From: Neoechinorhynchus agilis
Taxonomy: Eukaryota; Animalia; Acanthocephala
NCBI GenBank assembly: GCA_051530055.1
Contig: CM121342.1
Location: forward strand, 6,447,489-6,511,488
DNA: 64,000 nucleotides
Direction of reading: 5' to 3'
The notes beneath the pieces were generated by a model. That model did not search any database. It was not told where the DNA came from and saw only the letters and a list, made by a program, of their open reading frames with translations. Shown here piece by piece: positions 11,961 through 36,930 of the stretch; within the stretch, counting starts at the first letter, position 1, and every line of letters starts with the position of its first letter. The translations under genes and the position numbers were made by a program.

Positions 11961-12074
11961 AACAGTAACGGCAAAGAAAAATCGTCGATAGTAAAAAAAA
12001 TCGCTTATCTAGACGGAGATCTCAACGTGTAAAAATAAAAACAACTTTCCAAACTGAATTTGAAATACCAGCAC

Positions 12075-12181
12075 AAAATCATTTCTCGGCGAACCTGGTC
12101 AATGGTATCGTTAAAAGTTTTAAAAATCCATCTTTGGAAACATTTAATTTTTGAACAGCGATTGAATGGACGACTATGCGA
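12075..12181 (-). pseudogene. Truncated duplicate of the groucho-like 5' end and its upstream sequence
   Basis: Near-identical to ~32913-33018. It encodes FKTFNDTIDQVRREMI versus FKTLNDTIDQVRREMI in the full gene. Confidence 0.85.
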
Positions 12182-13334
12182 TCCGAGTTTCACTGCAATT
12201 CGATCGTTTTGAACGAATGCGTGCAAATTTTGGTTCGCAAATTTGCGCTGACAATTGTTAGGATCATTTAAGACGCCCGGATCCTCCAGACGGACCGAAG
12301 GTAGAAATTTGTTAGATATAATTCCGGTTTTGATGGAGCTCTGGGTTCATCGCTTCCCATAATATCTCCGGGTTTGATGGAGATTTGGGAGCATCGTTGA
12401 AAAATAGGTATAATCTCCGACCAGTTAAAAAGGAGGACTATATTTTTGTCATTAAAAATGAAGATCTGCTCAAAAAAGAAATTGGAATAAAAAATATCGC
12501 CAAAGCTAATCCGAAAAATTCTAAGATTTTCAAAAGAATATTTCAATATTCCCATAAAATTGTCCTTGATTTCCTGAAATATCTATCTACCATTCCCTAC
12601 TCAGATTTCTCCAGGAAATGCAACATCTTGATGCTAAAAGATAAAAATATTTTTAAAATAAGCCAAATGCAATGTTGGGACAGAAATTGACGATGCATGT
12701 CGAAGGGACGGACTGTCGATCGGATTACTTGGTTTTAAAGTCACCTTCGCAGTATTCAAGAATGAGATGGATGATTTTATACTCATATCAATACAGAAAA
12801 TGTCATGTTTTTCCCCGGTTTGGCGAAATTTATTAAATTATTTAAAGGGTCAATATTTCGACTCGCTAGGACGTTGCTTGTAAGTTTTCAAATATTCGAG
12901 TTCGAGCAACGTCCTGAAGAAGACTCACAAGCGAGTCGAAATATCGACCCTTTAAATAATTTAATAAATTTCGCCAAATCGGGGAAAAATGCAGAAAATG
13001 TCAGGGGCACATGGCATACAAATGCGATAAAAATGCAGCTGGCACTCACTGCAGTGGGGAGCACCTGTCCAGTAATTGCAAAAAACAAATGCTGTAGAAA
13101 ATGTGTTAACTGCATTTTGAACCATAAGGCATACGATACCAGATGCGAGGAAGCAAAAAAGTATTTGAATTTTTTCATTAACAGTGGCGAGAGTAGGATA
13201 ATGGAGACAAGGGATCAGTAAAATATATTTCTCAAAATCCTCATCAAGAGCCAGATTTGAAGTCCATCAAATTTTGATTCACTAAAGAAAATGAGGGCTT
13301 GAAAGAGGCGTTCAAAGTTTTTCAAAATATTACG

Positions 13335-13470
13335 TTTTGTTGAAAAGATAATTCATTGTTATTTGTCGATAGGAGAGATAAATGAAATTAAGATTTTATC
13401 TTCAGCAGAGATAGTGGATCGAAATATCCAATAAATTCTTAATTTCATTTATCTCTCCTATCGACAAATA
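13335..13470. mobile_element. Short TIR element (MITE-like), copy 1
   Basis: 33-bp inverted repeat ATTTGTCGATAGGAGAGATAAATGAAATTAAGA (13361-13393) pairs with ~13437-13469. The same family occurs in opposite orientation at 53976-54124. Confidence 0.8.
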
Positions 13471-15466
13471 AAAAATCAAAATATTACAAAAGGGCTTGAA
13501 GCTATTAGAAATGAGAATAAGGAATTGAAAAGTTCCTTAAAAAGCTTAATTAAAACCTTAAAAAAGGTTAGAATGGGAGGGGGCGACGTTGAAGGTCAGC
13601 CTGGAAGCTACCAAACCCGATTCGGAACCGACCAAGAAGGTATATTCAAACAGATAGTGTTCGTTTTTTTACATGTAATATTGGAAAATCCAAAAACTTA
13701 GATAATGATTTGTTTGGTGGGTTTTTACAAGAAACAGGGACCTTCCATCATTTGGCTTACCTATTTATGAATGTTCTTTAACTAAGCCAATCTACCCATC
13801 AAATAGCAAAAACTACTCCGGTGGTTTACAATCATTTTTGAGAAAAGATATTCAACCGAAAATGATCCGTGAAATTCATACGAATGAGCACGTTATTCAG
13901 ATAATATCATCCCTGAATCCTTTTCTAAATAAGGAAGCTTATTGCGGGCTCCTTAAAATAATTTGGGTGAATTTCTACCGCAATCCAAAGTGTAACATTA
14001 GAAAATCATTAGAGGTCATGAAAGAGCTCTTAGAAGTTTGGAAGCCTGATATCATGACTGGTGACATCAATAATAATCACCTGAATGCCTTTAGAAGCTT
14101 ATTCTCATCTAACTATACCACCATTATCTCTCAAGAACCCTCGTTCCACAATTGGTCGCAGATGGATCAATAGTAAGTAAAGATTTAAATGCTTTATTCA
14201 CCTTGGAAATCCAAATGAGAATGAGCTGGCGTCTGGGTCATGATGCTTTGTTCTTCACAAGCACTGGCCGAGTCTCTGAAAAAGCGTATAAAATTAACAC
14301 CAAATCTATTTTGGTTTTTAATAAAATTTTATTGGAACGAATTGCCGCAATTGTTAGCTGTGCTGCTTAGGTTCAGAGTTGATCTTAAAACAAACTAGAA
14401 ACGCAGGCTTTAGGCGTCAAGATCACAATTTGGGATTTCTTATAAAATTAGACAAATTGAATCTAGAAAAAGCGAACATCACTCAATTGCCCAAGTATTT
14501 AAAAAAAATACTTCTCTTCTATTGGAAGGATATTAAAAAAGAGAGGAAAAATCTATTGAAATGTGCAGCTTTCTCTAAAAAATGGCGGAATATAATTTTA
14601 AATGAGAAATTTGTGGACTGGAAGTCCAAAGCAGGTCCATGGATAGGGTGCTCTTCCTATCCTGAAGCAGTTAAATCAATTTTAAACTATTGTATGGGTA
14701 AAATCAGACCCGAGCCATATTTAAGACCAATTAATTTCAACGATAACTTGGAGGAGAGTGACTATTTTCCTAGAGGTGCTGATTTTATAAAGGCCTCGTT
14801 GGTGGGTCACTCATGGGCTCATAATACGTTCTCGCCTCCATCGGCAATATTTAAACTAATAAGCGAAGAGGTTAAGTCTGTGATGATTTCGAAAATATTT
14901 TTTTATTTAAGAATTTATCAAATAATGGAGATTAATAAAGTCAAACGTATTTTGATTCCCAAAAATAATTGCAAAAAGATCGCGGAGGTCAAGGAACTGA
15001 GGCCCATTTCCATTGAAAGAGCGGCAACATGGAAGCTCTTAGATTTCGTTCAAGATAATCATTTAATTCCGCCTCCACAGTCTGATTGAACAATTAGTGG
15101 ATTTATCTAGAAAAAGACAACGATATGTCAACGTGTTGCTACAATTGGACATATCGAAAGCATTCGATGAAATTGATCGCTCTTTTATCTCTAAGACTTT
15201 AAGATTTTTGAAAGTGCCTAAAAAACTTATCGACTATACTATGATCCCATTAGAGACAAAGGGGGCATTTTTCGAACTTGATAAGGATAAGAGAATTTTC
15301 CATCCTGTTCACGGAGTCACCTTTATCACCAATCTTGTTTGTGGTAGCTATGTTTTTTTATTCAAAAACTTCAAGTTTAAAAATGGATCTGAAATTTTAG
15401 TTTACGCGGACGATATTTCCTTTTTTTTAATAGTAAGGTTTTAATAGTTTAAAATTTTTAATGTCA

Positions 15467-18400
15467 GCATTTCAGATTCAATCTTTGAGTTTTCATTATA
15501 TCCCTCATTCCGCGCCACTCCATTGGGCCGTTGCTATCATGTTTGCCGTGTCAGAGAGGTTTCTGAGAAATATCCGAGAGGCAATTAAAAGTTGCCTGTG
15601 TGGCGGCAACGACTACACATTCTGATGACATCAGAGGTCTGTCAGGTGCGTTGGTATGTATATAACCAGAGGTGTGGGTCGACGCGTTCGTTTTTAAAAA
15701 AGAATCTGTTATAGTGGGCATGATGTCGCCATGCCATCGATCAGGTGATAAACAGTAGTAACTGCATGTGGTTACTGAGAGGAAATGTACTTGCCAGTTT
15801 GGACGATATATCAATACGAACAGTGAGCCTTAAATTGCCCACATTCTGAGTTCAGCAACCTCGTGTGTGTGGTTTGCACAGGCCGAGGCTCAATTTACCT
15901 TGCGAAAGATTGTCGAAGATGACACCAAGTTCTATTATATCACCGCAGCCCTCGATCAAGATACCGATGGGCGTGTGATTGATATTTTAGAGTGTCCACC
16001 TCAAGCGAACAAATACAGACGCCTATTGGACGCATTCTCGCTCTCTGAGTCCGACCAGCCGCATTCTGCACATCGATTTTCTCGGGGATTCTGAACTATC
16101 GGAGTTGATGGACAAGATGCAAGGCCATCTCGGGAAGCACCCATCGTGTTTCCAATTCATTCAAATCTTACCCGAGGATATTCGATCGGTCCTAGTACAC
16201 GGCAAGATAACCGATCCTCGAAAATTAGCACAAGCGGCCGACGAACTATGGAAGGCTAAGCAGCTCACCACATCTTCGATACGGCGGTCCAGCAAGAAAC
16301 AAGGTGGAATATGTTTTTACCATCAGCGATATGGTGCGAAGGCTAAACGATACAGATCTCCCTTTTCGATGAGAAATAATTCCGCGAATAAAGCCGAGGA
16401 AATAAATAGTTTATTCTACGCCTGTGATCAGCGTACTGGACGACGTTTTCTCGTAGATACGGGCGCCGAAGTTAGTGTAATTCCCGCAACGATATCCGAT
16501 AAATCAACAACCACTCATAATCGGACACTCACGGCTGCTAATGGTTCATCCACTAATACATTTGGAAGCAAAATGGTAGTGCTAAAACTCGGAGATAATA
16601 CGATAAATTGGAAGTTCCTGATTGCACCAGTGCGGCAACCTATATTGGGTGCGGACTTTCTCGGACATTCCGAACTTCTCGTCGATGTGCGTGGGAAACG
16701 GTCAATATGCCCGGAAACGAATAGAATAACGAACATTTCGTCGGCAACAATCAGACCCGGAGTAAAGATTTCTGAGACAACAATTCCAGATGAGTCACTT
16801 TGCACCAATATTCGGAACGAATTCCCAAACGTCATCAATCGTGTGCAGCACTACATCCAAACTAGTTGTGCTCCTATCCATGCTCGCTCAAGACGTCTCC
16901 CTTCTGAAAAGTAGCGATCGCTCAAACCGAGTTCCACAAATTGGAATCGCTCGGAGCCGGTCGAACAGTCGGTGGAGATGAATGGAACTTTTGAAAGCGC
17001 GAAGCAAGCATTAGCTGACGCCACAATGCTCACGCATCCGGCAATAGATGCGCCAATAGCAATAACAACGGACGCTTCTGATTACGCTGTTGGAGCAATC
17101 CTACAACAGAGGATTTCAGGAGATTGGAAGCCATTGGCTTTCTTCAGTCGTCAACTACGAAAGCCAAAGCAAAGCTAGCAATTTACTTGGCAATCAGACA
17201 CTTCCGCTATACAGTAGAGGGACGACCATTAACCGTTTTCACAGATCATCGGTCACTGATTTTTGCTCTCGACAACAAAGACATTTGAGCTACATCTCAG
17301 AATACACCACGAACATTGAGCATGTGAGTGGGCGCAGCAATCAAGTCGTCGATACGCTTTCGGGGGCTATTCTAGCCAACGTTAACGAAGGTATCTCTTT
17401 TGAAGCGATGCCTCAAGATCAACAAGAAGATCCCGAAACACAGGCATTACGGATAGCGAAATCAGCACTGCGTCTCCGAAACGTTCCCATCGGTAACGAA
17501 GGATTAACACTTCTCTGTGACATTTCATCCGGAACACAAAGACCGATAGTACCAACATCGTGGCGCAGAAGTGTATTCGACGCGGTTCACGAGCTGGCAC
17601 ACCCCGGAATAAGAGCGACCCGCAAGCTAATCACAAGGAAATTCGTCTGGCCTGGTATGGAAAAAAGATGTCGGCAATTGGGCTAAAACATGCATTACTT
17701 GCCAAAAAGTGAAAATTCAACGCCACGTGAAATCACCATTAGAAAAGTTTAAATTACCTTCCGAAAGGTTCGATCATATACACGTTGACCTGGTAGGACC
17801 TCTTCCACCTTCTCAGAGATTTACCCACTTGTTGACAATAGTTGATCGATTTATCCGCTGGCCAGAGGCCATTCCACTCAACCAGACAGATTCACTTTCA
17901 TGCGCCCTTGCCTTAATCAGCAACTGGATCTCCCGTTTTGGGGTCCCGAGTGATATTACCTCCGATCCACTTCGCGAATATGGGCCGATATGTCTCAATT
18001 ATTCGGCACAAAGCTATACCAAACAACATCTTATCAACCACAGGCAAACGGCATCGTCGAGAGGATGCATAGACACTTGAAGGCATCCCTGAAAGCTCGT
18101 TGGAAAAGTCCGAACTGGATGGACGAACTCCCATGGGTGATGTTGGGTTTGAGGACCTGCCCGAAAGTCGATCTGGAAACATCTTCTGCGGAACAAGTTT
18201 ATGGCAGTCCACTCAAAGTGCCAGGCGATTTTGTATACCATACGAAGGAAACAAGCGATCCAAAGAAACACTTTTGAAGAACTTCGCGAAAAGATCCGTT
18301 CCCTAGTATGATTCCAGACACCGAACCGTACCAGTTCATGTACCGAAAGTACTGGCAGATGCCCAGTATGTATTCGTAAGACGGGAACAACCCGGAGGTA

Positions 18401-18590
18401 AACTCCTGCCACTGTACAAAGGACCATATAAAGTGATCGATCGGGCGATAAATTTTTTAAGATTGATTACGGTGGTCGCTCCGAAACAATCTCAATCGAC
18501 CGACTCAAACCGGCACACGTCCACTACGATAGAAATTGCAACTCTCTCTCTACACCTGCAGAAAATAGGAACACTACTGGGGAAAGCTGA
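15467..18590 (+). mobile_element. Decayed Ty3/gypsy LTR retrotransposon (CsRn1-like gag), RT core deleted
   Basis: gag SLKLPTF*VQQP/WFAQAEAQF; protease FLVDTGAEVSVIP and ILGADFL; RNase H TDASDYAVGAILQQ; integrase HELAHPG...CITCQK, HIHVDLVGPLP, ITSD and QANGIVERMHR; C-terminal SIDRLKP. I found no paired LTRs, so the boundaries are approximate. Confidence 0.9.
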
Positions 18591-19825
18591 TCTGTAGATA
18601 AATCTCCAAAAATGTCTTATTATCCCTAACAACCAGACCAGAGCAACTAATCTTAGAACTTCAACACATTTATCAAATTTTAGAGAGTTGCCGAAGGTTT
18701 CGAAAAATAGCAAGTTATTAGGACTTAAGGTCCCGTTATTTGGATACCCGATTTGCGAGTTGGGAAGGATTCGAAATATGTTTTATAAAGCTAAACTCAT
18801 AATGAAAAAAGGGAAACGTTTAAGTCTAAATGATAAAATGGTGATAAATATAATTAAAACCCTTATTTTTGGTACAATTTGTTTTTTATAAGAGGCAGAC
18901 CACCAGAACAACGACTAATGATCTTTTTTAAAATCCTCCCGATTGTTAAAAAGATCAAGTTCTTATCAGCGGAATCAAATAAGGACTTGAATAAAGATCT
19001 GGCGATTTTATTTTTATCCAAAATATGGTTTTATAGCTGTAAATATAAATTGGCAAAACTTGTTTTTAATACACATAATCAAATGTGCCTGCAACTAATG
19101 AAAGCAAAGTTTGATTCAACTAATTTTAAATAAATTATAATCCGAGACTTTCTTAAGAAAAACCTTGATCATTTTTTAGAATCATTTGTATTCCCCTTCA
19201 CAAACGGTGAGTTACCTTAACAAATCTTAGGACCATTTATAGGAAATGGAAATATTCGAAACCAAACACGGCTAAATGCGATTATTCTTTGTTTTGATAA
19301 TTGCGCAGAGACACAAAAGAGTGCGCAATAACGACTAAATCTCAAACAATTGTAGAAAAGGATTGTAATGGAGGTTCTTAGAAAATGAATGATTGTAACC
19401 AGTATGAGTTAATAAATAAATAAATTTTTGAACAACGCATTGAACGTTTGATAATACAACAAAAATCATTTCCACATGAAGTTAATTGAAAAAAGATGAA
19501 TTTAATTCTGAGAGAAATTCCAATTCTTAAATGCGTCGACTTTTTTAAGAATCCTGCAAAGTCAGCAATTCTTAAGCATTTTAACTTTTTGTTTTGTCTT
19601 CTACTTATCATAGAGATTTTGAAACCAAAATGAATTTGAAAAAGTTGAAAAACTGCACAAATCATATCGAAAAGACGTGAAAAATCAACGATTATATAAA
19701 GACATAAATCGAAGTTGAATAAAATGCACGGAAATAAACTTAAAGTACAGAAACTAAGCGACGTTCACAAAATAAATTTAAGCTTATGAACAACATTTCG
19801 CGACATGTTTACAAAACTCCTTGGG

Positions 19826-19832
19826 TATAAAA
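19826..19832 (+). promoter_or_regulatory. TATA box of secreted repeat gene copy 1 (identical at 26749-26755 and 36868-36874)
   Basis: GGGTATAAAAGGGGG lies 63 bp upstream of the ATG in all three paralogues. AATAAA lies about 20 bp after each stop (e.g. 20771-20776). Confidence 0.65.
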
Positions 19833-19888
19833 GGGGGCAGATCGAGTCGATTAATCATTGATCATCAATTGCAAACTCGTGAACTCAA

Positions 19889-20752
19889 ATGAACTTCAAC
19901 GCTCTCTTTTTTGCTTGCGCTTTAATCGCCATTGCATCCTGCTACGGAGACTGCTGTTCTCCAGCAGAATGTAGACAAGAACCAATCTGCGCTGCTGAAC
20001 CAGCTAAAAATATCGTTAAAACATTCAAAGTTGTGGTCCAACGAGCACCAAACAGTCCCGAAATGGCAGCTTGTAAACCGGAACCTGCCCATAGAATGAA
20101 AGCGCAAAAAGCACCAATCTGTGAACCAGCACAATTCGACGAACCGGAACCAGTTTGTCAAAGTTGTTCTCAAAGGACTTCAGCGTTCAGTCCGAAGTCA
20201 GTTTGTGAACCGAAGGAAGTCTGCGAATCGGAACCAGTTTATAAAAGATATTCTCAAAGGACATCAGGGTTTAGGCAGCAGCCAGTTTGTCAACCGGAGT
20301 CAGTTTGTGAGCCAGCACAATTCTATGAACCGCAGGAAGTTTGTCAACCGGAGTCAGTTTGTGAGCCAGCACAATTCTATGAACCGGAGTCAGTTTGTCA
20401 ACCGGAGTCAGTTTGTGAGCCAGCACAATTCTATGAACCGCAGGAAGTTTGTGAACCGGAGTCAGTTCGTGAGCCATCGGTGAAAAGCTCGTCCTCGGCG
20501 CCAGCCGTTGCGATTCCAGCGATTCGAATAACATTCATCCAACCAAAATCGGAGATCGTGCAAAGTTCAATCCAGGAAAGTCGCGAGGACACTGTACGGA
20601 AACCGATTTGTCAGGAAAGAAGTTCCAAAATCTGTTCAAGCGGCCAAAAGCAGGGGAACGTCATTCGTAAACCAATTTCGGCTCCCTTACGTTCTTGTTA
20701 CAAGAACGCTGCTGAAAACGTTTGCAATAAGTGCAACGCTTGCCGTTGTTGA
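19889..20752 (+). CDS. Secreted Cys-rich hexapeptide-repeat protein, paralogue 1 (287 aa)
   Basis: Intact ATG-TGA single-exon ORF with signal-peptide-like MNFNALFFACALIAIASCYG, repeats EPAQFY/EPQEVC/QPESVC, Cys-rich termini, a TATA box and a polyA signal. Confidence 0.85.
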   Translation: MNFNALFFACALIAIASCYGDCCSPAECRQEPICAAEPAKNIVKTFKVVVQRAPNSPEMAACKPEPAHRMKAQKAPICEPAQFDEPEPVCQSCSQRTSAFSPKSVCEPKEVCESEPVYKRYSQRTSGFRQQPVCQPESVCEPAQFYEPQEVCQPESVCEPAQFYEPESVCQPESVCEPAQFYEPQEVCEPESVREPSVKSSSSAPAVAIPAIRITFIQPKSEIVQSSIQESREDTVRKPICQERSSKICSSGQKQGNVIRKPISAPLRSCYKNAAENVCNKCNACRC

Positions 20753-21574
20753 TCTTAGAATTTTAGACTTAATAAAACTTAGTTGGCAAGTCGTGAATGT
20801 CGGGTACGCAAGTAAAATGCTATTTTTGATCTGTTTCCTTTCCAATTTTACCGAAGAACGATAAATGTTTAAAAAATTTCAATTGTGCATAATTTTCATG
20901 ATCTAATTTTCAAAAAGATGCCATTATTTTTATCCGCGACAAATTTAGATTGCAGTTTCTACTTCTTAAACTGGGCTTTTTAAAAATTAACGTTTTTCCG
21001 GCAACATTCAGCTTCTACAACCACGTTCTCCGCGGAGCTCGGATATTGCATAATTTTGAAGCGTAAACTGCTGAAATGTTCCCTAATTCCTACCTTTCAA
21101 ATTCCGAATAAGTCCAAACGCTAATTTATAAACGTCTTGTGATTGGCTCTTTACATTTAATAATTTAAACTTTCGTTTAAAAATTGCAATAATGGATCAC
21201 ACCTTTTTTTACACGTTTGCTAAACGAAAAACAAATCGGTTCTATAAAAAGGTTCACTTCTAATAATTTTCTTTTATACTTTATTTTAATACTCTGATGG
21301 CGTCAATCATTTGAATAACATTTTAGTTTGAAAAAAGAAAATGCTGCAGCTATGGATTGCTCGTTATATTGTCAAAAATGTTGAAGTTCGATGAACAAAT
21401 CTTGAGAAAAGTTGCTTTTACGGCATTGAAAGCGACGACTAAAGTTAATGGCATTCTTCTTTATGATGTGGAAAACTGTCCATTCCGCTTAAAATCCGCC
21501 GCCTAAAGAAAGTGTTTTTTGAATGGTTTTTGTGATATCCACTATGCAATCACAATTGTCCGCCAAATTAGAGC

Positions 21575-22320
21575 TTCTCTCCATCCTTGGCTGTCGCTAT
21601 CACGTTAGCAGCAATGCCTCGTTGTACTGCGAGCGAGATATTTTGCCGCAGGAATACACCTGCTCGTTCGTCGCCTGTGGTTTCTCTGAATTTCCTTGAG
21701 AGATCTGGGCCCTTGCTAAATCCCTATATTTTCGTACCTTCCTCCCTTCCGCTGCACTGGCGGCACCTCCATCGATTTCGAGAAAGTAGGAAATGTTGCT
21801 TACTGCGATGGACGTTGCGTCCTAGAGAAGGCGTTCGCCCTCCCGCAACGGAAAGGTCGGAATTCAGTCAGGTCGACGACCGTCTAGTCGACAAAGATTT
21901 CCGGGTTCCAAGATGTTGGGGAAGTTCGCCGTTCTCAACGCCCGAGAAATTGATCTCAGAATGGCATGAGAACCTTCCTCCTGACTTTCGGCAAACGAGA
22001 CCGTGTCGACCGAAAGCATCAACCAAAGACCCACATCGACAGCGGCGTGTATATCGGGAGACCAAGCCTTAAGGACACTGCGATTCTCGTTACCTCATCA
22101 GTGAGAAGAGTTCCCACAGATGCCAAAGCAACAGCCTCCAACCACGCCCCCGATTCTCGTGAACAATCGAGCTCGGACGACCCCATCGCGAGAACCTGAA
22201 AGTAGAGAGCTGTGAGCTCTCGCAGCGGGAGGTCCGTCCCAGCTCGACTGTCTGAGGCCATTCACGGGAACATGGTTAACGCCTGTCCGCTGGCACCATT
22301 CTTCAACTGCCACCACAAAG
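21575..22320 (-). mobile_element. 3' fragment of a CRE-like (RLE-type) non-LTR retrotransposon
   Basis: QSSWDGP...RARL, ESGAWLEA, CRCGSLVDAFGRHGLVCRKSGGRFS (CCHC), EPGNLCRLDGRRPD (RLE) and AGVFLRQNISLAVQRG. Confidence 0.8.
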
Positions 22321-22356
22321 TCTTAGTCAAGACAAAACTTTTTCCTCAGAATTTTC

Positions 22357-22733
22357 GTCGCTTGTAAACGTCGCTTAGTTTCTGTACTTTAAGTTTATTT
22401 CCGTGCATTTTATTTAACTTCGATTTATGGCTTTATATAATCGTTGATTTTTCACGTCTTTACGGTATGATTTGTGCAGTTTTTCAACTTTTTCAAATTC
22501 ATTTTGGTTTCAAAGTCTTTATGATAAGTAGAAGATAAAACAAAAAGTTAAAATGCTTAAGGTTTGCTGACTTTGTAGGAATCCTAAAAAAAGTCGAGAC
22601 ATTTAATAATTATAATTTTTCTCGGATTTAAATGCATCTTTTTTCAATCAACTTCATGTAGAAATTATTTTTGTGGTATTTTCAAACGTTCAATGCGTTG
22701 TTCACATAGTCGCCCATTCAATCGCTGTTCAAC
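22357..22733 (-). repeat. Inverted copy of the ~370-bp upstream region of the secreted gene, containing the uninterrupted (empty) LINE target site
   Basis: The reverse complement matches 19430-19767 and 36473-36810 and extends to GAACAGCGATTGAATGGGCGACTATGTGAACAACGCATTGAACGTTTG with no insert. Confidence 0.88.
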
Positions 22734-23169
22734 ATAAACAGCAGTCAGCAGTCCTAGACGTCAAATAAAATCACATGATTTGAAGCCTCGCGATCCTCCT
22801 GATAAACGCAAAACTAATCCGATGGTCAATGACAAGATTAGTTTGGAGGGTCTCAGGGATGGGAATGTTGGTATTCCTCCCAATTTGGTTTTGAGTAAGT
22901 CCTGCCCCCCGACAGTTTTTCCTAAATAATCATTGGGTTTCCCGCCCCCACATGCAAGTTGTTTTTGGTTTTAGACATGGAAGGGTTAAACTCTTCCAAT
23001 GTTCCAAGGTATGAAAACATACAAAGTTTAACTAAGGTTTCAAATAAAAATGACTCCTCATTCATTCGAGATTTTCATCCAACGGAAAATGGGTGTTTTT
23101 TTATTTCTTACCTCAAATTTTCGATGCCTTGCGTCTTCGTCAGGGAGCTTCCCTTCGGTGATCTGAAAA

Positions 23170-25874: not shown

Positions 25875-26475
25875 CTGTTTCCAGGAATTGGGAATTTCCA
25901 ACAATTAGATTTACGAAGGAGTTATCGAGTAGACTCCAGACCAAGACAGGAAAGTGGAGACTCTTGGTGCGCTCGGTAGCTCGGCACTTCGATTTACGAG
26001 GAAGCAATCTAGTAGACTCCAGACCAAGACAGGAAAGTAGAGACTCTTGGTGCGCTCCGTAGCTCGGCACTTCGATTTACGAGGAAGCAATCTAGTAGAC
26101 TCCAGACCAAGACAGGAAAGTAGAGAATCTTGGTGCGCTCCGTAGCTCGGCATTTAGATTTACGAAGGAGTTATCGAGTAGACTCCAGATCTTGGTGCGC
26201 TCCGTAGCTCGGCATTTAGATTTACGAAGGAGTTATCGAGTAGACTCCAGGCCAAGAAAGTGGAGACTTTTGGGGCGCTCGGTAGCTCGGCACTTAGATT
26301 TACGAGGAAGCAATCTAGTAGACTCCAGACCAAGAAAGTGGAGACTCTCTTGGCTCCAGGCCAAGACAGGAAATACAAGGACTGGTGCCTTCCTGCGGCA
26401 AACCATTGGTCTCGTGATCCAAAGAGGAAAAGCAGCGAGTGTGGTCACGACCACTGAGCGTGGACGGCAGTGATT
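25875..26475 (+). mobile_element. CRE-like 3' end with ~5 copies of the 83-bp repeat
   Basis: Repeats of GAGACTCTTGGTGCGCTCGGTAGCTCGGCAC...AGTAGACTCCAG followed by TGAFLRQTIGLVIQRGKAASV. Same family as 59880-61720. Confidence 0.85.
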
Positions 26476-26811
26476 GTTTAAACGTTTTGTTGTTGTGTGA
26501 AAATGAAAAAATATGATTCGTTTAAAAAAATCATTTATTCAAATGGTTCGTATAAATTGCTTGCTATATTTTTAAAAGAGTCAAGATCAATTTTAATAGT
26601 GTGAATAAAAAGCCTGAGACGTGTCTTAGATGTATAATAAAATAAACTGTAAAAAAAGAAAATTAAAGTACAGAAACTAAGCGACGTTCACAAAATAAAT
26701 TTAAGCTTATGAACAACATTTCGCGACATGTTTACAAAACTCCTTGGGTATAAAAGGGGGCAGATCGAGTCGATTAATCATTGATCATCAATTGCAAACT
26801 CGTGAACTCAA

Positions 26812-27783
26812 ATGAACTTCAACGCTCTCTTTTTTGCTTGCGCTTTAATCGCCATTGCATCCTGCTACGGAGACTGCTGTTCTCCAGCAGAATGTAGACA
26901 AAAACCAATCTGCGCTGATGAACCAGCTAAAAATATCGTTAAAACATTCAAAGTTGTGGTCCAACGAGCACCAAACAGTCCCGAAATGGCAGCTTGTAAA
27001 CCGGAACCTGCCCATAGAATGAAAGCGCAAAAAGCACCAATCTGTGAACCAGCACAATTCGACGAACCGGAACCAGTTTGTCAAAGTTGTTCTCAAAGGA
27101 CTTCAGCGTTCAGTCCGAAGTCAGTTTGTGAACCGAAGGAAGTCTGCGAATCGGAACCAGTTTATAAAAGATATTCTCAAAGGACATCAGGGTTTAGGCA
27201 GCAGCCAGTTTGTCAACCGGAGTCAGTTTGTGAGCCAGCACAATTCTATGAACCGCAGGAAGTTTGTCAACCGGAGTCAGTTTGTGAGCCAGCACAATTC
27301 TATGAACCGCAGGAAGTTTGTCAACCGGAGTCAGTTTGTGAGCCAGCACAATTCTATGAACCGGAGTCAGTTTGTCAACCGGAGTCAGTTTGTGAGCCAG
27401 CACAATTCTATGAACAGAAGTCAGTTTGTCAACCGGAGTCAGTTTGTGAGCCAGCACAATTCTATGAACCGGAGTCAGTTTGTCAACCGGAGTCAGTTCG
27501 TGAGCCATCGGTGAAAAGCTCGTCCTCGGCGCCAGCCGTTGCGATTCCAGCGATTCGAATAACATTCATCCAACCAAAATCGGAGATCGTGCAAAGTTCA
27601 ATCCAGGAAAGTCGCGAGGACACTGTACGGAAACCGATTTGTCAGGAAAGAAGTTCCAAAATCTGTTCAAGCGGCCAAAAGCAGGGGAACGTCATTCGTA
27701 AACCAATTTCGGCTCCCTTACGTTCTTGTTACAAGAACGCTGCTGAAAACGTTTGCAATAAGTGCAACGCTTGCCGTTGTTGA
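26812..27783 (+). CDS. Secreted Cys-rich hexapeptide-repeat protein, paralogue 2 (323 aa)
   Basis: Near-identical to paralogue 1 but with 36 more aa (six extra hexapeptides). It sits in a near-identical duplication, ~26663-29035 versus ~19739-22003. Confidence 0.85.
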   Translation: MNFNALFFACALIAIASCYGDCCSPAECRQKPICADEPAKNIVKTFKVVVQRAPNSPEMAACKPEPAHRMKAQKAPICEPAQFDEPEPVCQSCSQRTSAFSPKSVCEPKEVCESEPVYKRYSQRTSGFRQQPVCQPESVCEPAQFYEPQEVCQPESVCEPAQFYEPQEVCQPESVCEPAQFYEPESVCQPESVCEPAQFYEQKSVCQPESVCEPAQFYEPESVCQPESVREPSVKSSSSAPAVAIPAIRITFIQPKSEIVQSSIQESREDTVRKPICQERSSKICSSGQKQGNVIRKPISAPLRSCYKNAAENVCNKCNACRC

Positions 27784-28604
27784 TCTTAGAATTTTAGACT
27801 TAATAAAACTTAGTTGGCAAGTCGTGAATGTCGGGTACGCAAGTAAAATGCTATTTTTGATCTGTTTCCTTTCCAATTTTACCGAAGAACGATAAATGTT
27901 TAAAAAATTTCAATTGTGCATAATTTTCATGATCTAATTTTCAAAAAGATGCCATTATTTTTATCCGCGACAAATTTAGATTGCAGTTTCTACTTCTTAA
28001 ACTGGGCTTTTTAAAAATTAACGTTTTTCCGGCAACATTCAGCTTCTACAACCACGTTCTCCGCGGAGCTCGGATATTGCATAATTTTGAAGCGTAAACT
28101 GCTGAAATGTTCCCTAATTCCTACCTTTCAAATTTCGAATAAGTCCAAACGCTAATTTATAAACGTCTTGTGATTGGCTCTTTACATTTAATAATTTAAA
28201 CTTTCGTTTAAAAATTGCAATAATGGATCACACCTTTTTTTTACACGTTTGCTAAACGAAAAACAAATCGGTTCTATAAAAAGGTTCACTTCTAATAATT
28301 TTCTTTTATACTTTATTTTAATACTCTGATGGCGTCAATCATTTGAATAACATTTTAGTTTGAAAAAAGAAAATGCTGCAGCTATGGATTGCTCGTTATA
28401 TTGTCAAAAATGTTGAAGTTCGATGAACAAATCTTGAGAAAAGTTGCTTTTACGGCATTGAAAGCGACGACTAAAGTTAATGGCATTCTTCTTTATGATG
28501 TGGAAAACTGTCCATTCCGCTTAAAATCCGCCGCCTAAAGAAAGTGTTTTTTGAATGGTTTTTGTGATATCCACTATGCAATCACAATTGTCCGCCAAAT
28601 TAGA

Positions 28605-30840
28605 GCTTCTCTCCTTCCTTGGCTGTCGCTATCACGTTAGCAGCAATGCCTCGTTGTACTGCGAGCGAGATATTTTGCCGCAGGAATACACCTGCTCGTT
28701 CGTCGCCTGTGGTTTCTCTGAATTTCCTTGAGAGATCTGGGCCCTTGCTAATTCCCTATATTTTCGTACCTTCCTCCCTTCCGCTGCACTGGCGGCACCT
28801 CCATCGATTTCGAGAAAGTAGGAAATGTTGCTTACTGCGATGGACGTTGCGTCCTAGAGAAGGCGTTCGCCCTCCCGCAACGGAAAGGTCGGAATTCAGT
28901 CAGGTCGACGACCGTCTAGTCGACAAAGATTTCCGGGTTCCAAGATGTTGGGGAAGTTCGCCGTTCTCAACGCCCGAGAAATTGATCTCAGAATGGCATG
29001 AGAACCTTCCTCCTGACTTTCGGCAAACGAGACCTTGTCGCCCGAAAGCATCAACCAAAGACCCACATCGAAAGCGATGGGCGAGGTCTTAAGGACACTG
29101 CGATCCTCGTTACCTCATCAGTAAGAAGAGTTCCCACTGATGCCAGAGGAACAGCCTCCAACCACGCCCCAGATTCTCTTGTTGAAACTGCCAACAGTCC
29201 AGCTCGGACGACCCCATCGCGAGAACCGGAAAGTAGAGGGCTGCCCATCTTCGAGGTCTCCCTAATCAGCGTCTCCAAATCGCGCAGTACAACGGAGGGA
29301 TCACCTCCCAGCGTAGCGTCAACCAAGTACCAAGCATTGAAGCTGGAATGGAGAGAGCGTGCTATTGGATTTACTGTTAGGGAGAATGCGATTGGACCGA
29401 GGGGATCTCCTTGCTGCACTCCTATTTCGGACCAAATGAGGAGGTCTTCGAAAAGTAAAGGAGTCGCCGCCCCGTAAGCATTGAGAAAATACTGGAAGGC
29501 TTCTGGTGCGTGATCCCTAATTGCGCAGAACATGATTTCTCTATTGAGAGAGTTAAAGGCATTCTGAAAATCACACTTAAGAATCACGCACGGCTCTGAG
29601 CTTCTCGTAGCAAAGTTTCGGAGCGAGTGGACAATAGCTTCCGCCCCGCAAGATGTGCAGCAGCCCAGTTGGACTGGACGAAGTTGCTGCCCGGTTTTCT
29701 CTGTAATACGTTTGCAGAGAATTTTTCCTGCAAGTCGGCGTATCGTCGAAGATACGGCGATGGGACGAATCCCACCTTCTTTTTTTGTGAGGGCATATAA
29801 TGATGCTCCGAAAAATAGGTCTTTTCCAACGCGATTCAAATCCTCTCCAGTCAGGCGGTCGACTATTCGAGAAAGCGCACTTCCTAGAGAGAGCTGCTTC
29901 ACCAGTTGAAAAGGACACCATGTCCTTTAGGTGCTGAGGCCTTAGTCCGTCAAGCCCGTGACCCGAACCATTTGCAAAAGTTGAGATGGCCTTTTTAACT
30001 CTGAAATTTGAGTGGGCGTCCTGTCTTGTATGGGAGGAGATGGAATTTCAAAACTTCCGCTACTGCATGGGTGCTTTGACCGGAGTATTTGCTGTGTCCC
30101 GTTGTCTCCTTGTGCAAAACTGTTGGAGGATGACAATAACCGAACAGCCCCTCGAACATCTCCGTCCGCAAGCTTCGAAGAGACACGCTCAGTCAGTGAT
30201 CGTTTTGAAAAACGGCAGCGAAACTCTTCCTTCGTGCGTCCCTTACGAACCTCGCGGAGAATCCTTTCAAAATTGTTAAATATTTGTTCAAAGGAGGCGA
30301 ACTTTTCCTTGATTATTGATGTCAAAGACACCTTAGAATCATCACTGGTGCAAAGGACTAAGCGCGGGGCGCACAGTTCGTTTGGAAGCAATCGTTGACC
30401 AATCCCGTAAATGCTTTGGCGACCTGATATCGTGTGCCCTTTGGGATCCGTTTCGGGACGTTCCTGGGCAGAAACCGCACGATGTCAGGTATCGAAATAG
30501 AATCAGTGGTGATCTGAGAGGTCCCAGGCATAAACAGATCGGTTGATTGTGGTGGAGAACCAGATCCGCTACAGCGGAGATTCCGGGGACGATGGGCAAA
30601 CAAAAACCCCAAATTGGTTAATTGAAAAGACTTATCGCAAACCGGACACACCAGTAGAAACGCGTAGGAGCCCGGCAACGTTGGTCTTCTCAGGTTGAGC
30701 GCGGTTTGCGTCAGTGATTTGATGAACAGAATTTCGGCCTGGTGTCCCGATAGCGTTGGGCGTTTCCTCTTTCTTTTCACTTGGCTCATTTTGGGCGGGC
30801 AAGTTTCCGTCTTCATATTGTTGTCTAGCATCCAGGTTCC
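28605..30840 (-). mobile_element. CRE-like RLE non-LTR retrotransposon, near full length, internally deleted and frameshifted
   Basis: N-terminal CPVCDK zinc finger and PKRIPKG; RT KKEGGIRPIAV, QLG, GAEAIVH, DFQNAFNS, GVQQGDPLGP and WYLVD; then a jump to RAGLLAVSTRESGAWL, the RLE and FLRQNISLAVQRG. Confidence 0.85.
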
Positions 30841-31049
30841 GAGCGAGGAGGCGGCATCGGTGTCGTCGGCTACTCTTCGTTCAAATTAAGTTTACCTATT
30901 GAACCTTCTACGAATCTGATTTGTTGCTTTAAGCTCAAAGACCTATAAAATAACTTCTATCGAAGCCCAGATGGCACAATTTGATACGTTTTAAATTTAG
31001 CTGAGACACTAAGAGTTTAATAGGCTATTAAAGTGGGCCAAAATCAATG

Positions 31050-32980
31050 TTAGACTTTACAAATCACAGCCATTCGATCCACAGTGCCTACAATTAAATA
31101 TTTGCCGTCTTTGCTAATTTCACAAGACAAAGCAGCTCTTGGCAAATCGAGTTGGAAAATCTGGCATAATCCTTTAGTCTTCCAACCTTTTACTGCTCCA
31201 TCAGACCCACATGAAACGAAATATCGACCTGTCGGGGAATAGGCAACCGACAAAGCACAACCTTCATGTCGTCCAATTTTGTGCCGTTTTCCCTCGATGG
31301 CGATCGATACAACATCAACGGTTCCATCGGCTAAGCAGGCAACAAAGTGATCATTCTTTGGTCCGATCTGGACGCCGAGGACATCGCTGTTGAACGAATA
31401 ATCTTTAACAGGTCGATCGAAACGGCGTTCGTCCCATTCAAGAACGAGTTGATCCAGGCCGCCAGTAAAGACACTGTAGTTGTTTATTGAAGTATCCACA
31501 CAAGTAGCTCCGTTCTGGTGAACTGAGATCTCATAAAGTGTCTTTTGCTCTGCAATGTTCCATACTTCGAGTTTACCACGTTCATACAATGAGAATCCTC
31601 GACGTGAATCAACGGAAACAGCAAGTGAAGCGCATGCTGGTGAGTTGGTTGTATAAAATCCAATGGTTCGAGTCGAAGGGCCCTTTAGTTCAACTTGCGC
31701 AATTTTGGAATCACATCCACCGATTAACATGGCCGAAGAACAATTAAACATCTTTGCCGCTTTTATTAGGACGCTTTCACCAAGACAATCAATAGTGGCA
31801 ACGTATTCTCCGGTTCTTAGTGTCGGATTTTGATCGCTTAAAATTGACGACAATGACCAAAGTTTCAATGAAGGTCCACCCAGCGAATAGGCGTAATCGA
31901 TAGACAGATTTACCGAACGCAATTGGACAACAAAAACAACAACTAAAATTTACAAAAGCATTTAAAAACAATTATAAATGACACATTGGAATTTGTGCAC
32001 CGGTATCCATTTTTAAAAATGAAAAATATTTTACGAAAAAATATCACGTTTAACCCGAAGAAACATTAGCAATGGGGGCGGAGAAATGGGTTTAAAAATC
32101 ATAAAAATACAATAAAATATTCGGTTAATTTTTTTGTAAAGAAAAAAGTGCATTCAGCGAACCTACCGTTTAGAGCAGGTGAGAAAGCAACGGCATTCAC
32201 GCATCTCTCATGATTGAGATTGATTATCTTAACGAGTTTCTTAACATCACAAGTTTGATCCTTTTGTGGATGCAGGCAGTCGGTAGTCGATTTGACAGAG
32301 TAATCCAAAGCTAATCCGCCATCTTCTTTATTATCCGCTTCTACACTTTTTCCTTCCTCCCGAACTTGTCTCAATTGATCGACGTAACTGAAAAACCGTT
32401 GGCTCGGTACAAAATCAGATTTGGTTTGTTCAATATTCGGTGCACTTTCACACTTGATTTTGCTACCGAGTTTACGTCCTTGATTACGCTGAGGTCGCAA
32501 TTGATTAACAAAATGTTCATTCGAAGGAAACCTTGCACGTTGATCGGTGCGGATTGTTGATGGAATATTTGAAGATCCTTGATTGCTGGAGGTCAGTTGA
32601 CCACTATTTGGTGCCGACGGATTATTACATGAAGTGTTATGTTGCATTGCAATTAAATTGTCTCGTCTTGAATGAATTAAGTCTGTATCGAGGACACGTT
32701 TACACAAATCAACTTCCTTTTCTACTTGATCTATCATTTCATTCGGCAAATTGGACTTTATATCTTCACAAAGTTTAAGAAGATTGCTCGTAGTTGCTCG
32801 CCTAATCACCAGCGCTTGTGAAAGCTTATCCGAAACACCTTTATAAGTAAAGACGTCTTTAGCCATCCTTTCATTTTTGGATCGTAAATCATTGCAATAC
32901 TGAGACAAAATAATCATTTCTCGGCGAACCTGGTCAATGGTATCGTTCAAAGTTTTAAAAAAATCCATTTTTGAAAACAT
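31050..32980 (-). CDS. gro: Divergent Groucho/TLE-family WD40 co-repressor (two segments, probable intron ~31943-32160)
   Basis: N-terminal Q-domain-like FKTLNDTIDQVRREM. WD40 motifs align by eye with TLE: HQNGATCVD...VFTGGLDQLVLEWD (HTDGASCID...WTGGLDNTVRSWD), RHEGCALSVAYSPTGRYFVSCGSD (HESCVLSL...GKWFVSTGKD), and LSCEISKDGKYLIVGT (LSCDIS.DDKYIVTG). The exact splice junction is uncertain. Confidence 0.8.
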
Positions 32981-33030
32981 TTAATTTTTGAACAGCGATT
33001 GAATGGACGACTATGCGAACAACGCATTGA

Positions 33031-36000
33031 CGACCATTGGAGTTATGTGTGCGAAACAGGCTGTTGTGCGGCGGAGGGTGGCGAACGAGAATTCCCGTGC
33101 CTCCGGACATTCGGAATCAACTTCTCAGCGATCAAAACAGTAAGCACTTCGTGGAGGTGCCTTCAAAAAGATGGCCCAATACGATAAGAATCGAAGCAAA
33201 TCCAATACAACCCAGAGAAGAGCTACACAGACGTTATCTGGCTCCGTGGCTCAAATCCTTTAAGGATGATATCCATCGTATTTCATCCATCAGCTATTTC
33301 GGAGGAATATTGAAAATCAGGTTTATAGCAGCGGATTTTATGAAGGCTTTTCTGGCCTTCACCAAGGAAAACTGCAACCTTGCAGGTGTGGCAATTTCGA
33401 ACACAAGTTATGAATCAACCTTTATCGTTTCTGGGCTATCTCCAGATATTGATGATGCAGATAAGATAACGTTCGAGGAAAAATTCGGAGTCAAATTGCT
33501 CTTTTTCCTGAAGTCATTAAGAACGGGGAAGTTTATTCCCAAAGCTATTGTTAAAGCAGCGGTCGAACGGAGGGACGCACTTTGCACTGAGCGATCCTTC
33601 TTTTAAATCAATGGAGGTTAAATTTACTTCAAACGGGATTTCGCGTTACGACGACTATTACTTTCCTCGGTGCAGTGGGTGTCAATGTTGGGGACATTGG
33701 GAGCAGAGGTGCCCGTCCAAGGTCACGCGATGCGCTTTTTGTGGCCAAGACCACCACAGTACCAAATTTGAGAAAAAGAAAAGCCACTGCTCAAACTGCG
33801 ATCGAGATGGACATTGTGCGTTCTCGACGAATTGTGAAGCATTTAAGGAATATGTTGGGTGGGCGAGACTGCTTGGATCCAAGGGAAATAATTCATCCGA
33901 CAAGTTGGAATACGACAAAGGACAAACCCATAAGAGGATCTGCCACAACCAATACAACCATAGAAACATACCCAAGGCAACAACTGGGTACATCCAAAGA
34001 TGTTAATAATCTACGAACGACTTATGATGACACCTTGGAAAAGAAGTTGCCTGATTTCTCCGCTAAAATCCTCGACATGGTCGATCTACGAATCACCGCG
34101 GCCATTCAGGGTCTTGAGAGGAGACTGTCTGCCCAGTTAAACGGTCTCATCGAAACTCTCTCGACAGAATTCATAGATATTCAGATCGCGACCGGGGTAG
34201 CTCCAGCACCCTGCAAACGCAGTCGAGCACTGGTTTCAAGTAGCAACGGTGTAGACGATGTGAATATGTGCGAGGCCGAGGAGTTCGTAACATCATAAGC
34301 GACTGGCGGGGTCCAAAATCTCATCAAGGGTAGGTCTCAATGGAATTGAGAATTGCGCAGTGGAACGCAGGCGGGCTTCTGGGTACGATTTTTCTTTGCA
34401 GATGACCCATCAAGGTCTATATTCTATCAATCCAAAGGGGTTCCTCAAGGCTCACCTTTATCACCCATACTTTTTTGCTTGGCAACTCAATTTTTGATTA
34501 AAAATTGTAAGATTTGTCGTAGCGTCACTATGCACGCCGATGACCTTACTGTAGTTATCAAAGAGTTAAATTATTTGAGAGCACGTGCGAAACTGGCTGC
34601 CGTGCTGAACTTTTTAAAATCTCACCTACCTCATATGGGTCTCTCTTTGAATCAAGACGAAATTTTTAATCAAATCTAAATCTCGAGTGGGTAAGAAGAA
34701 CATCCGCGATTATATCAAGGATTTCTTTTGGGTTAGATTTCGACCCTGCTTATAAGAAACTTGATATTTTAGGTTATACTTTCACTAATAACCTTTCGCC
34801 CGCCTCCGATATACACAAGATGGAAAAACTTTTAAGGACAGCCAGAGTTAAGGCGAGACGCGCCGCTCGTATTAGGCTCAGCGCCAAGATATGCAAAGTA
34901 ATATGGTGCTCTTGGGCTATTTCAGGCCTAGTTTTTTATTCCAGAGGAAGGCCTCCAGAACAACGCCTAAAATTCCGCTGTGTATTCTTGAAAACCCTGT
35001 CGAGACTACCCTTTGAGTGGATTTCCTCAGCAGACTGGGCCAATAAATCCATGCAGTGGATCGGATTATGACTTCCAAAAACGGATAGTAACTAGTATAG
35101 AATGTTGCTTCAGTTATTCAGCGACAACGGTCGATCCATGGTTTGCCTTTGCGAATAATTTTTTTAATATTTTTGGGTTAGATTTCGACCCTGCTTATAA
35201 GAAGCTTGATATTTTAGGTTATACTTTCACTAATAACCTTTCGCCCGCCTCCGATATACACAAGATGAAAAAACTTTTAAAGACAGCCAGAGTTAAGGCG
35301 AGACGGCCGCTCGTATTAGGCTTAGCGCCAAGATATGCAAAGTAATATGGTGCTCTTGGGCTATTTCAGGCCTAGTTTTTTATTCCAGAGGAAGGCCTCC
35401 AGAACAACGCCTAAAATTCCGCTGTGTATTCTTGAAAATCCTGTCGAGACTACCCTTTGAGTGGATTTCCTCAGCAGACTGGGCCAATAAATCCATGCAG
35501 TGGATCGGATTATGACTTCCAAAAACGGATAGTAACTATAGAATGTTGCTTCAGTTATTCAGCGACAGCGTTCGATCCATGGTTTGCCTTTGCGAATAAT
35601 TTTTTTAATGGATTTTTGGGTTAGATTTCGACCCTGCTTATAAGAAGCTTGATATTTTAGGTTATACTTTCACTAATAACCTTCGCCCGCCTCCGATATA
35701 CACAAGATGAAAAAACTTTTAAAGACAGCCAGAGTTAAGGCGAGACGGCCGCTCGTATTGGCTAGCGCCAAGATATGCAAAGTAATATGGTGCTCTTGGG
35801 CTATTTCAGGCCTAGTTTTTTATTCCAGAGGAAGGCCTCCAGAACAACGCCTAAAATTCCGCTGTGTATTCTTGAAAATCCTGTCGAGACTACCCTTTGA
35901 GTGGATTTCCTCAGCAGACTGGGCCAAAAATCCATGCAGTGGATCGGATTATGACTTCCAAAAACGGATAGTAACTAGTAGAATGTTGCTTCAGTTATTC

Positions 36001-36472
36001 AGCGACAGCGTCGATCCATGTTTGCCTTTGGAATAATTTTTTTAATATTTTTGGGTTAGATTTCACCCGCTTATAAAAGCTTGATATTTTAGGTTATACT
36101 TTCACTAATAACCTTCGCCCGCCTCCGATATACACAAGATGAAAAAACTTTTAAAGACAGCCAGAGTTAAGGCGAGACGGCCGCTCGTATTGGCTAGCGC
36201 CAAGATATGCAAAGTAATATGGTGCTCTTGGGCTATTTCAGGCCTAGTTTTTTATTCCAGAGGAAGGCCTCCAGAACAACGCCTAAAATTCCGCTGTGTA
36301 TTCTTGAAAATCCTGTCGAGATCCCTTTGAGTGATTTCCTCAGCAGACTGGGCCAAAAATCCATGCAGTGGATCGGATTTGACTCAAAAACGGATATAAC
36401 TATAGAATGTTGCTTGGTTATTCAGCGACAACGTTCGATCCATGGTTTGCCTTTGACGAATAAATTTTTTTT
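33031..36472 (+). mobile_element. APE-clade-like non-LTR retrotransposon (LINE-B), internally deleted, flanked by a 13-14-bp target-site duplication
   Basis: gag with three knuckles CSGCQCWGHWEQRC, CAFCGQDH and CSNCDRDGHCAFSTNC; RT palm KGVPQGSPLSPILF...HADD; LDILGYTF; RGRPPEQRL shared with LINE-A. Flanks are GAACAACGCATTGA (33017-33030) and GAAAACGCATTGA (36473-36485). Confidence 0.82.
34722..36472 (+). repeat. Tandem amplification (~4 copies, ~440 bp) of the 3' terminal part of LINE-B
   Basis: GGGTTAGATTTCGACCCTGCTTATAAG recurs at ~34730, 35175, 35617 and 36053, and the MKKLLKTARVKARR ORFs repeat. Confidence 0.92.
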
Positions 36473-36930
36473 GAAAACGCATTGAACGTTTGATAATACC
36501 ACAAAAATAATTTCTACATGAAGTTGATTGAAAAAAGATGCATTTAAATCTGAGAGAAATTCCAATTCTTAAATGCGTCGACTTTTTTAAGAATCCTGCA
36601 AAGTCAGCAATTCTTAAGCATTTTAACTTTTTGTTTTGTCTTCTACTTATCATAGAGATTTTGAAACCAAAATGAATTTGAAAAAGTTGAAAAACTGCAC
36701 AAATCATATCGAAAAGACGTGAAAAATCAACGATTATATAAAGCCATAAATCGAAGTTAAATAAAATGCACGGAAATAAACTTAAAGTACAGAAACTAAG
36801 CGGCGTTTACAAAATAAATTTAAGCTTATGAACAACATTTCGCGACATGTTTACAAAACTCCTTGGGTATAAAAGGGGGCAGATCGAGTCGATTAATAAT
36901 TGATCATCAATTGCAAACTCGTGAACTCAA

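Follow-up and report, generated by a model that had tools for sequence, protein, structure and literature searches.

Two dispersed LINE families abut the same nucleotide in a duplicated divergent promoter of Neoechinorhynchus agilis

Two elements ending at one nucleotide

We analysed a 64,000-nt stretch of the genome of the acanthocephalan Neoechinorhynchus agilis (contig CM121342.1, here C2, positions 6447489-6511488; hereafter the window), in which two long interspersed nuclear elements (LINEs), LINE-A and LINE-B, end at the same position of a duplicated segment of about 45 bp. Genome-wide counts refer to the whole 46.2-Mb assembly. The segment reads TTTTTGAACAGCGATTGAATGGACGACTATGC followed by GAACAACGCATTGAACG and is an imperfect direct repeat of GAACA(R)CG(C)ATTGAA, with the halves GAACAGCGATTGAA and GAACAACGCATTGAA sharing GAACA. 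A groucho-like gene on the minus strand has its first ATG 36 bp away, and the ATG of a repeat-protein gene is at a distance of 458 bp; the target region is a compact divergent promoter. Its right motif occurs six times in the genome and its left motif eight times, giving seven to eight target copies in total. Five are empty: W3 in the window, C3a, C3b and C3c on contig C3, and a diverged copy, C1x, at C1:733144. LINE-A occupies W1 in the window and a copy on contig C31, while LINE-B occupies W2 in the window. Empty sites read tatgc and then GAACAACG across the junction; at W3 (minus strand, 22730-22683) GAACAGCGATTGAATGGGCGACTATGT runs directly into GAACAACGCATTGAACGTTTG.

The two filled sites in the window are composed as follows.

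12077-12181, plus: left-flank remnant of unit copy W1, 95% identical to 32912-33018, its last two bases (GA) being the start of the target; aligned with W2, C3b, C1x and C31
12182-15427, plus: degenerate 5' part of LINE-A, with 5' untranslated region, ORF1-like region with CCHC knuckles (ORF, open reading frame), possible endonuclease region and reverse transcriptase (RT) up to the YADD box; RVT_1 match on 15097-15444, family 5' ends at 10 other loci
15428-18556, plus: nested fragment of a long terminal repeat (LTR) retroelement, not part of LINE-A, with aspartyl protease, integrase zinc finger and integrase core (Pfam gag-asp_proteas, RVP, Integrase_H2C2, rve)
18557-19424, plus: 3' part of LINE-A with a (TAAA)n tail at its end; 89-95% identical to at least 12 full-length matches of a 530-nt 3' probe at other loci
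19425-19429, plus: TTTTT between the LINE-A tail and the target, seen in 0 of 11 other distinct LINE-A junctions and in no empty site
19430-22212, plus: right unit of W1, with the target motif (19430-19450), promoter region and a repeat-protein ORF (19889-20752), from self-comparison, the ORF list and right-flank alignment
33017-33030, plus: left copy of the LINE-B target-site duplication (TSD), GAACAACGCATTGA; the empty paralogue L004 carries the motif once
33031-33044, plus: 14 extra bases at the LINE-B 5' junction, unique among copies of the family, whose 5' ends start at ATGTGTGCG (33045 here)
33045-34725, plus: LINE-B body, with an ORF1-like region carrying three CCHC knuckles and a short RT fragment (ORFs; RVT_1 on 34353-34679, E=7.5e-12)
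34726-36472, plus: four tandem units of about 440 bp of the LINE-B 3' end, with gaataa(a)T6-8 closing every unit (94-97% in self-comparison)
36473-36485, plus: right copy of the LINE-B TSD, one C lost

LINE-A ends ...taaataaataaaTTTTT (...gttaataaataaataaaTTTTT) at 19429 and is followed from 19430 by GAACAACGCATTGAACGTTTG; LINE-B ends ...cgaataaaTTTTTTTT at 36472 and is followed from 36473 by GAAAACGCATTGAACGTTTG. Both thus stop immediately before GAA(C)AACGCATTGAACGTTTG. On the 5' side, LINE-A has only GA (12180-12181) in common with the target, and LINE-B is bounded by a duplication of 14 and 13 nt, GAACAACGCATTGA on the left and GAAAACGCATTGA on the right. The paralogue L004 on contig C3 matches the left flank of W2 at 92% over 1500 bp and is collinear with W2 for 1.5 kb leftward and more than 350 bp rightward, and thus provides a genuine empty counterpart of the LINE-B insertion. 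With the motif present there once, LINE-B entered W2 cleanly. By comparison, the LINE-A junction is atypical for its family, with a GA duplication only, as against 7-13 bp elsewhere, and the additional TTTTT. All sequences, coordinates and junctions quoted in the initial annotation of this stretch were reproduced, the empty site at 22730-22683 included, as was its observation that two related families abut the same nucleotide in paralogous, multicopy sequence upstream of a repeat-protein gene.

Both elements are less simple than that annotation had them. Its single LINE-A of 12182-19429 has the correct 3' junction and takes in the nested LTR-retroelement fragment, which the same insertion lacks in its C31 copy; LINE-A proper is only about 4.1 kb (12182-15427 plus 18557-19424). 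The 5' part is collinear with C31 11545-14964 at 96.9% ungapped identity. Its RT matches Pfam RVT_1 with E=1.6e-6 and 28.4 bits, slightly under the curated cut-off of 29.6 bits, and frameshifts abound, as in every copy of the family that was read. For LINE-B (33031-36472) the junctions stand, but the element is internally deleted, lacking the endonuclease and most of the RT (the remaining RVT_1 match passes the curated cut-off), and its last 1.75 kb are the four tandem 3' units. Tandem arrays of this 3' end of about 440 bp were found at many loci, with up to at least nine units (C2:7429388-7433377, C28:9416-10552 and C1:10336982-10368972). In a tree of units, the last unit of the window array clusters with the last units of arrays elsewhere (support 97/91), and its internal units fall outside, among their internal counterparts from other loci. 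No TSD was seen between the tandem units. Since terminal and internal types are kept across loci and TSDs are missing between units, the arrays seem to have been retrotransposed as arrays, not built by repeated insertion.

Could the common junction be that of a single insertion, carried along by segmental duplication and followed by divergence of the copies? W1 and W2 are sister units 20 kb apart, in keeping with this. Their left flanks are 95% identical over 105 bp. On the right, identity is 96.5% in the first 345 bp and drops to 86% over 1 kb, a stretch that takes in repeat-rich coding sequence; the initial estimate of about 90% was right as to high identity and too low as a figure. In contrast, the DNA of LINE-A and LINE-B can be aligned only in coding motifs of 40 and 26 nt, and they match, as had been noted, mainly at the protein level, in short stretches of 31-61% identity (14 of 23 residues around RGRPPEQRL, 31% around the YADD box). 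Each also belongs to a multicopy family of its own, with 89-95% (LINE-A) and 90-93% (LINE-B) identity to other loci. LINE-A and LINE-B are therefore different families, and a single insertion multiplied by duplication can be ruled out, as the initial annotation had held on the strength of element and flank divergence.

The remaining copies of the duplicated unit in the window, and the genes on either side of W2, are listed below.

22362-22740, minus: W3, the inverted empty copy, with the double motif at 22730-22683; 91-93% identical to W1 and W2
26641-29243, plus: W4, a further unit copy that begins 289 bp downstream of the site and lacks it; 97.8% identical to 19718-20476, closest relative of W1
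31050-32980, minus: groucho-like gene, with a WD40 C-terminal ORF and an N-terminal ORF (Pfam WD40 and beta-propeller on 31050-31922; first ATG at 32980)
36931-38910, plus: repeat-protein ORF of 659 aa downstream of W2 (from the ORF list), its ATG 458 bp from the site

No Pfam family was found for the 659-aa protein. In the 345-bp right flank, the 96.5% identity of W1 and W2 compares with 91-93% to the empty copies, and the two group together with 80/80 support. A 700-nt tree that includes the site-less W4 gives (W2,(W1,W4)) with 84/88, W1 and W4 forming a sister pair (95/92) and W3 grouping with the C3 copies (96/94). Seven of the 12 differences between W1 and W2 in the 345-bp flank fall in the first 80 nt by the LINE-A junction (19430-19510), and all seven are specific to W1.

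Further breakpoints in the same 45 bp

Contig C31 (31127 bp) is a paralogue or haplotig of W1 in which LINE-A has an identical 5' junction; identity to W1 (ungapped) is 97.5-98.4% in the flanks and 94.5-96.9% in LINE-A. It carries a third element, LINE-C (7488-11535, minus strand), inserted in reverse orientation with a clean 10-bp TSD, GAACAGCGAT, which is the sister half-motif and lies 27 bp left of the LINE-A/LINE-B junction. LINE-C is 4 kb long, with a (TAA)n tail, a triple-CCHC ORF1 and an RT that passes the curated RVT_1 cut-off (E=3.4e-15), although its ORFs are split over frames in the C31 copy. At least 25 dispersed copies are present in the genome, and their identity of 97-99% marks the family as recently active. 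The 9-mer GTTCAAAAA was seen at positions +7 to +15 of the 3' flank twice, for LINE-C in C31 (7478-7487 region) and for an unrelated LINE-B at C2:15075360 (L047); the match may be fortuitous, or may hint at a weak target feature common to both. C31 (L083, L085, L084, L086) is a palindromic counterpart of window positions 6340-19226, with a left arm at 4243-7487 and an inverted arm at 15631-20069, and its LINE-A is cut at the palindrome junction, 15630/15631. The palindrome may represent either a misassembly or a genuine inverted duplication.

The three elements have the properties of LINEs: they lack LTRs, terminate in a simple tail at a defined 3' position, start at variable 5' positions and have TSDs of 7-15 bp. 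They are three families, probably of one divergent lineage, with a CCHC-knuckle ORF1, an RT and A/T-rich or T-run tails; the tail is (TAAA)n for LINE-A, T6-8 for LINE-B and (TAA)n for LINE-C. A homologue search with the LINE-C RT ORF came back blank, and PDB searches for the LINE RT returned weak group-II-intron and retron RT matches only. As for the endonuclease, the best hit of any element was a faint Exo_endo_phos_2 match on the C31 copy of LINE-A (E=0.14), and no clear Pfam domain of the apurinic/apyrimidinic endonuclease (APE) type was found in the other ORF pieces of LINE-A, LINE-B and LINE-C, all copies of which are frameshifted.

Two further sequences adjoin the segment. At W3, homology with the other copies breaks off exactly at the first half-motif GAACAGCG, next to a Penelope-like element:

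22741-24650, minus: Penelope-like retroelement, its 3' side adjoining the W3 first half-motif; in ORF 23344-24126, a YVDD box like that of an RT and a C-terminus resembling GIY-YIG, both identified by eye

The ORF at 23344-24126 gave no Pfam match. The element has five other genomic copies, about 80% identical over the 3' 307 nt, and the bases at its very end, gttgaa, overlap the beginning of the half-motif through microhomology. In C3a and C3c, homology stops at -20, 12 nt from the end of a repeat of about 180 bp that is present at three other loci.

Genome-wide dispersal and the origin of the shared junction

Site-specific LINEs of the APE type include R1, Tx1, SART1 and TRAS1, and the initial annotation had proposed LINE-A and LINE-B as elements of this kind, dedicated to the motif and thus revealing a new retrotransposon target. 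The resemblance is real, in that the two elements share a 3' junction, have different 5' junctions and sit in a multicopy target of seven to eight copies, and the related LINE-C uses the sister half-motif. A genome search with the motif and both 3' ends led elsewhere. The LINE-A 3' end has at least 17 genomic matches (at least 12 spanning the whole 530-nt 3' probe at 89-95%), and the LINE-B 3' unit at least 60. After removal of duplicates and internal tandem junctions, 11 other LINE-A and 24 other LINE-B 3' flanks remained; none of these 35 lies at the target motif, and their sequences are unrelated. Where both ends of a copy could be read, the TSDs were also of unrelated sequence: 9-15 bp for LINE-B (GAACAACGCATTGA in the window, GAGGGG(G)TTCAAAAA and AGATACGTT elsewhere) and 7-13 bp for LINE-A (CATATAACTGCCG, TGAACGCAGT and CAAATAA). 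Most copies are thus off target, the duplicated sequence is not constant, and the target is itself scarce and mostly empty, five of its copies being unoccupied. LINE-C, with its many young dispersed copies, would likewise be poorly served by a target present only eight times. With R1, Tx1, SART1 and TRAS1 the two elements share a fixed 3' junction, variable 5' junctions and a multicopy target, whereas nearly all other copies here are at unrelated sequences and most target copies are free. We therefore conclude that LINE-A and LINE-B are ordinary dispersed non-LTR retrotransposons and that none of the three families is specific for the motif; a dedicated site-specific element is very improbable. 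Had a LINE proved specific for a gene promoter, site-specific retrotransposons would have gained a new class of target; the present evidence removes that claim.

A milder preference for target sequence fared no better. GAAC or GTTC occurs in the first 15 nt of seven of the 35 flanks, compared with a background of 9.1% (P=0.035, post hoc), which is too weak to serve as an explanation, and no convincing consensus emerged from the 35 flanks. A ribosomal DNA target for LINE-A was also considered and rejected: the flank TGAACGCAG of four copies (on C6, C89 and C22) looked 5.8S-like, but Rfam returned no RNA family. These four copies (C89:4563-5085, C6:71336-71815, C6:77064-77591 and C22:20958-21485; L014, L019, L018 and L017) have the TSD TGAACGCAGT in common as well as the flank, and so represent a single insertion that was copied along with its surroundings. 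Two others, at C1:10675073 (L020) and C1:9285515 (L026), 90% and 95% identical to the window copy, abut a repeated (TT)GGCCCTGAACTTCGGGTTTTGCGATC no more than 2 nt apart; this is a possible second case of junction reuse, or an old duplication.

The number of insertions in the segment is far above the chance expectation. Some 100 3' ends of LINE-A, LINE-B and LINE-C were detected in the 46 Mb, from which fewer than 0.001 insertions are expected in 8 x 45 bp; even a 20-30-fold local enrichment of transposable elements (TEs), as in this window with its many satellites and TEs, raises this only to about 0.02. Three LINE insertions are observed, LINE-B in W2, LINE-A in W1/C31 and LINE-C in C31, within 27-37 bp of each other across paralogous copies, two of them at the LINE-A/LINE-B position itself. 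We suggest, at a probability of roughly 55%, that dispersed LINEs hit a local insertion hotspot of about 45 bp in the divergent promoter independently of one another. The three families would integrate by staggered target cleavage, leaving duplications of 7-15 bp at many unrelated sequences, and different elements would have broken and entered the segment in different paralogues: LINE-B in W2 with a clean 14-bp TSD, LINE-A in the W1/C31 lineage with its atypical junction, and LINE-C in C31 in reverse orientation with the TSD GAACAGCGAT. The Penelope-like element of W3 and the repeat of about 180 bp of C3a/C3c abut the same segment. The TTTTT after LINE-A may consist of untemplated A's added to the primer strand, or reflect tail variation. 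In this reading LINE-A and LINE-B are probably independent events, and the clustering was probably caused by local features of DNA or chromatin, not by sequence-specific recognition. An advantage of a local hotspot is that it also covers LINE-C and the remaining breakpoints within these 45 bp.

Several observations weigh against it. W1, W4 and W2 form one local clade in the trees described above, so that the filled copies are not spread over the family and a single ancestral occupancy is possible; the junction of LINE-A has GA alone in place of the usual 7-13 bp, and its TTTTT resembles a LINE-B tail. A physical cause was sought and not found: a small ATGCG-N5-CGCAT hairpin across the junction proved not significant (z = -1.9). 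Further to that, the window is rich in TEs and satellites, which raises the chance expectation, and the breakpoints of W3 and of C3a/C3c are partly rearrangement borders instead of simple insertions. Of the initial proposal that two families had hit the nucleotide independently, the two families are established and independence is plausible, but the single clade and the T's, which may be a remnant of a LINE-B tail, tell against it.

The same observations suit a sequence of occupancies, in which LINE-B would have inserted in the ancestor of the W1/W4/W2 clade and, after duplication, LINE-A would have entered the A/T-rich LINE-B tail in W1. The same or a later event would have deleted the LINE-B body and 12 nt of the left TSD, leaving five T's before GAACAACG, and the shared nucleotide would be inherited, not targeted anew. 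W1 and W2 are indeed closest among the site-bearing copies; the T's follow LINE-A at none of its 11 other junctions, while all LINE-B copies end in six to eight of them; and the missing TSD of LINE-A is what an insertion with target deletion would give. End branches of the LINE-B units measure 0-0.026 and the flank branch of W2 0.008, values of similar magnitude, so LINE-B could predate the W1/W2 split, although these lengths give no order for the two events. However, W1 retains no LINE-B sequence but the T's, the deletion must have stopped exactly 2 nt into the old left TSD, an unlikely coincidence, and LINE-C and the other breakpoints are left unexplained. We therefore regard this course of events as possible but doubtful. 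Only one public sequencing run covers the region, as short Logan unitigs, and the loose ends of these belong to the empty site of W3 and to sequence flanking other copies of the families.

The T's and the GA can also be explained without LINE-B, if the identity of the two junctions is only apparent. LINE-A would have nicked left of TTTTTGAACAGCG in the first half-motif, with the top strand cut 34 nt downstream between GA and ACAACG; the nascent TTTTTGA(ACA) would then have joined the downstream GAACA by microhomology, skipping 27 nt, so that LINE-A would come to be flanked by ...CTATGCGA on the left and TTTTTGAACAACG on the right. The string TTTTTGAACA is present both in the left flank (12147-12156) and directly after LINE-A (19425-19434), and the GAACA common to the two half-motifs provides the microhomology. 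These steps call for slippage and for a stagger of 34 nt, far above the 7-13-bp TSDs of the family, and we regard them as decidedly unlikely.

An extended version of the preferred hotspot is that the double GAACA(R)CG(C)ATTGAA segment attracts a whole lineage of acanthocephalan LINEs, with integration guided by something at the site, for example a promoter-bound factor, open chromatin or a nick-prone structure, instead of by the sequence specificity of an endonuclease. We consider this unlikely. Were it true, it would resemble the promoter-tethered targeting known for Ty and Tf1 elements. To our knowledge, such tethering has not been established for endonuclease-bearing LINEs.

Comparison with other reused sites and remaining features of the window

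What is left standing is either a small insertion hotspot or an artefact of sequential occupancy, in a duplicated divergent promoter and involving dispersed LINEs of a poorly characterised acanthocephalan lineage. This is similar to what was observed in NF1, where non-specific L1 and Alu insertions used three nucleotide positions twice, clustered within 1.5 kb (Wimmer et al. 2011, PMC3219598). In both cases dispersed, endonuclease-dependent elements reuse the same nucleotides in a short region with no dedicated recognition. Unlike in NF1, the insertions described here are fixed, lie in paralogous copies of a duplicated promoter segment and come from three LINE families, and the independence of the hits on the same nucleotide is something we infer.

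Reuse of one locus by retrotransposons has also been described as double insertion at one site, with the TSD regenerating the target (McGurk and Barbash 2018, PMC5932611). Tail-to-internal LINE tandems and tandem arrays derived from TEs belong to the same picture and bear comparison with the 3' arrays of LINE-B. However, no copy of the TSD stands between the LINE-B units, which seem to have been transposed as arrays, and LINE-A and LINE-B do not follow one another in tandem.

The locus is thus a small, well-documented case of non-random LINE integration, in which a Penelope-like element and LINEs of three dispersed families have converged on 45 bp of duplicated promoter within a compact 46-Mb genome. 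It indicates that shared retroelement junctions are not always homoplasy-free markers, and a site of this kind could serve to find what makes DNA vulnerable to LINE endonucleases.

The gene cluster lies in a repeat-rich region, the window being filled with tandem satellites with periods of about 255, 132, 83, 116 and 217 bp (235-5867, 8705-11342, 25900-26500, 41277-42657, 46894-47810, 56074-56981, 59870-61600 and 62823-64000). Between unit W4 and the groucho-like gene there is a further RT-bearing ORF on the minus strand (29051-29902; Pfam RVT_1, E=1.7e-12).

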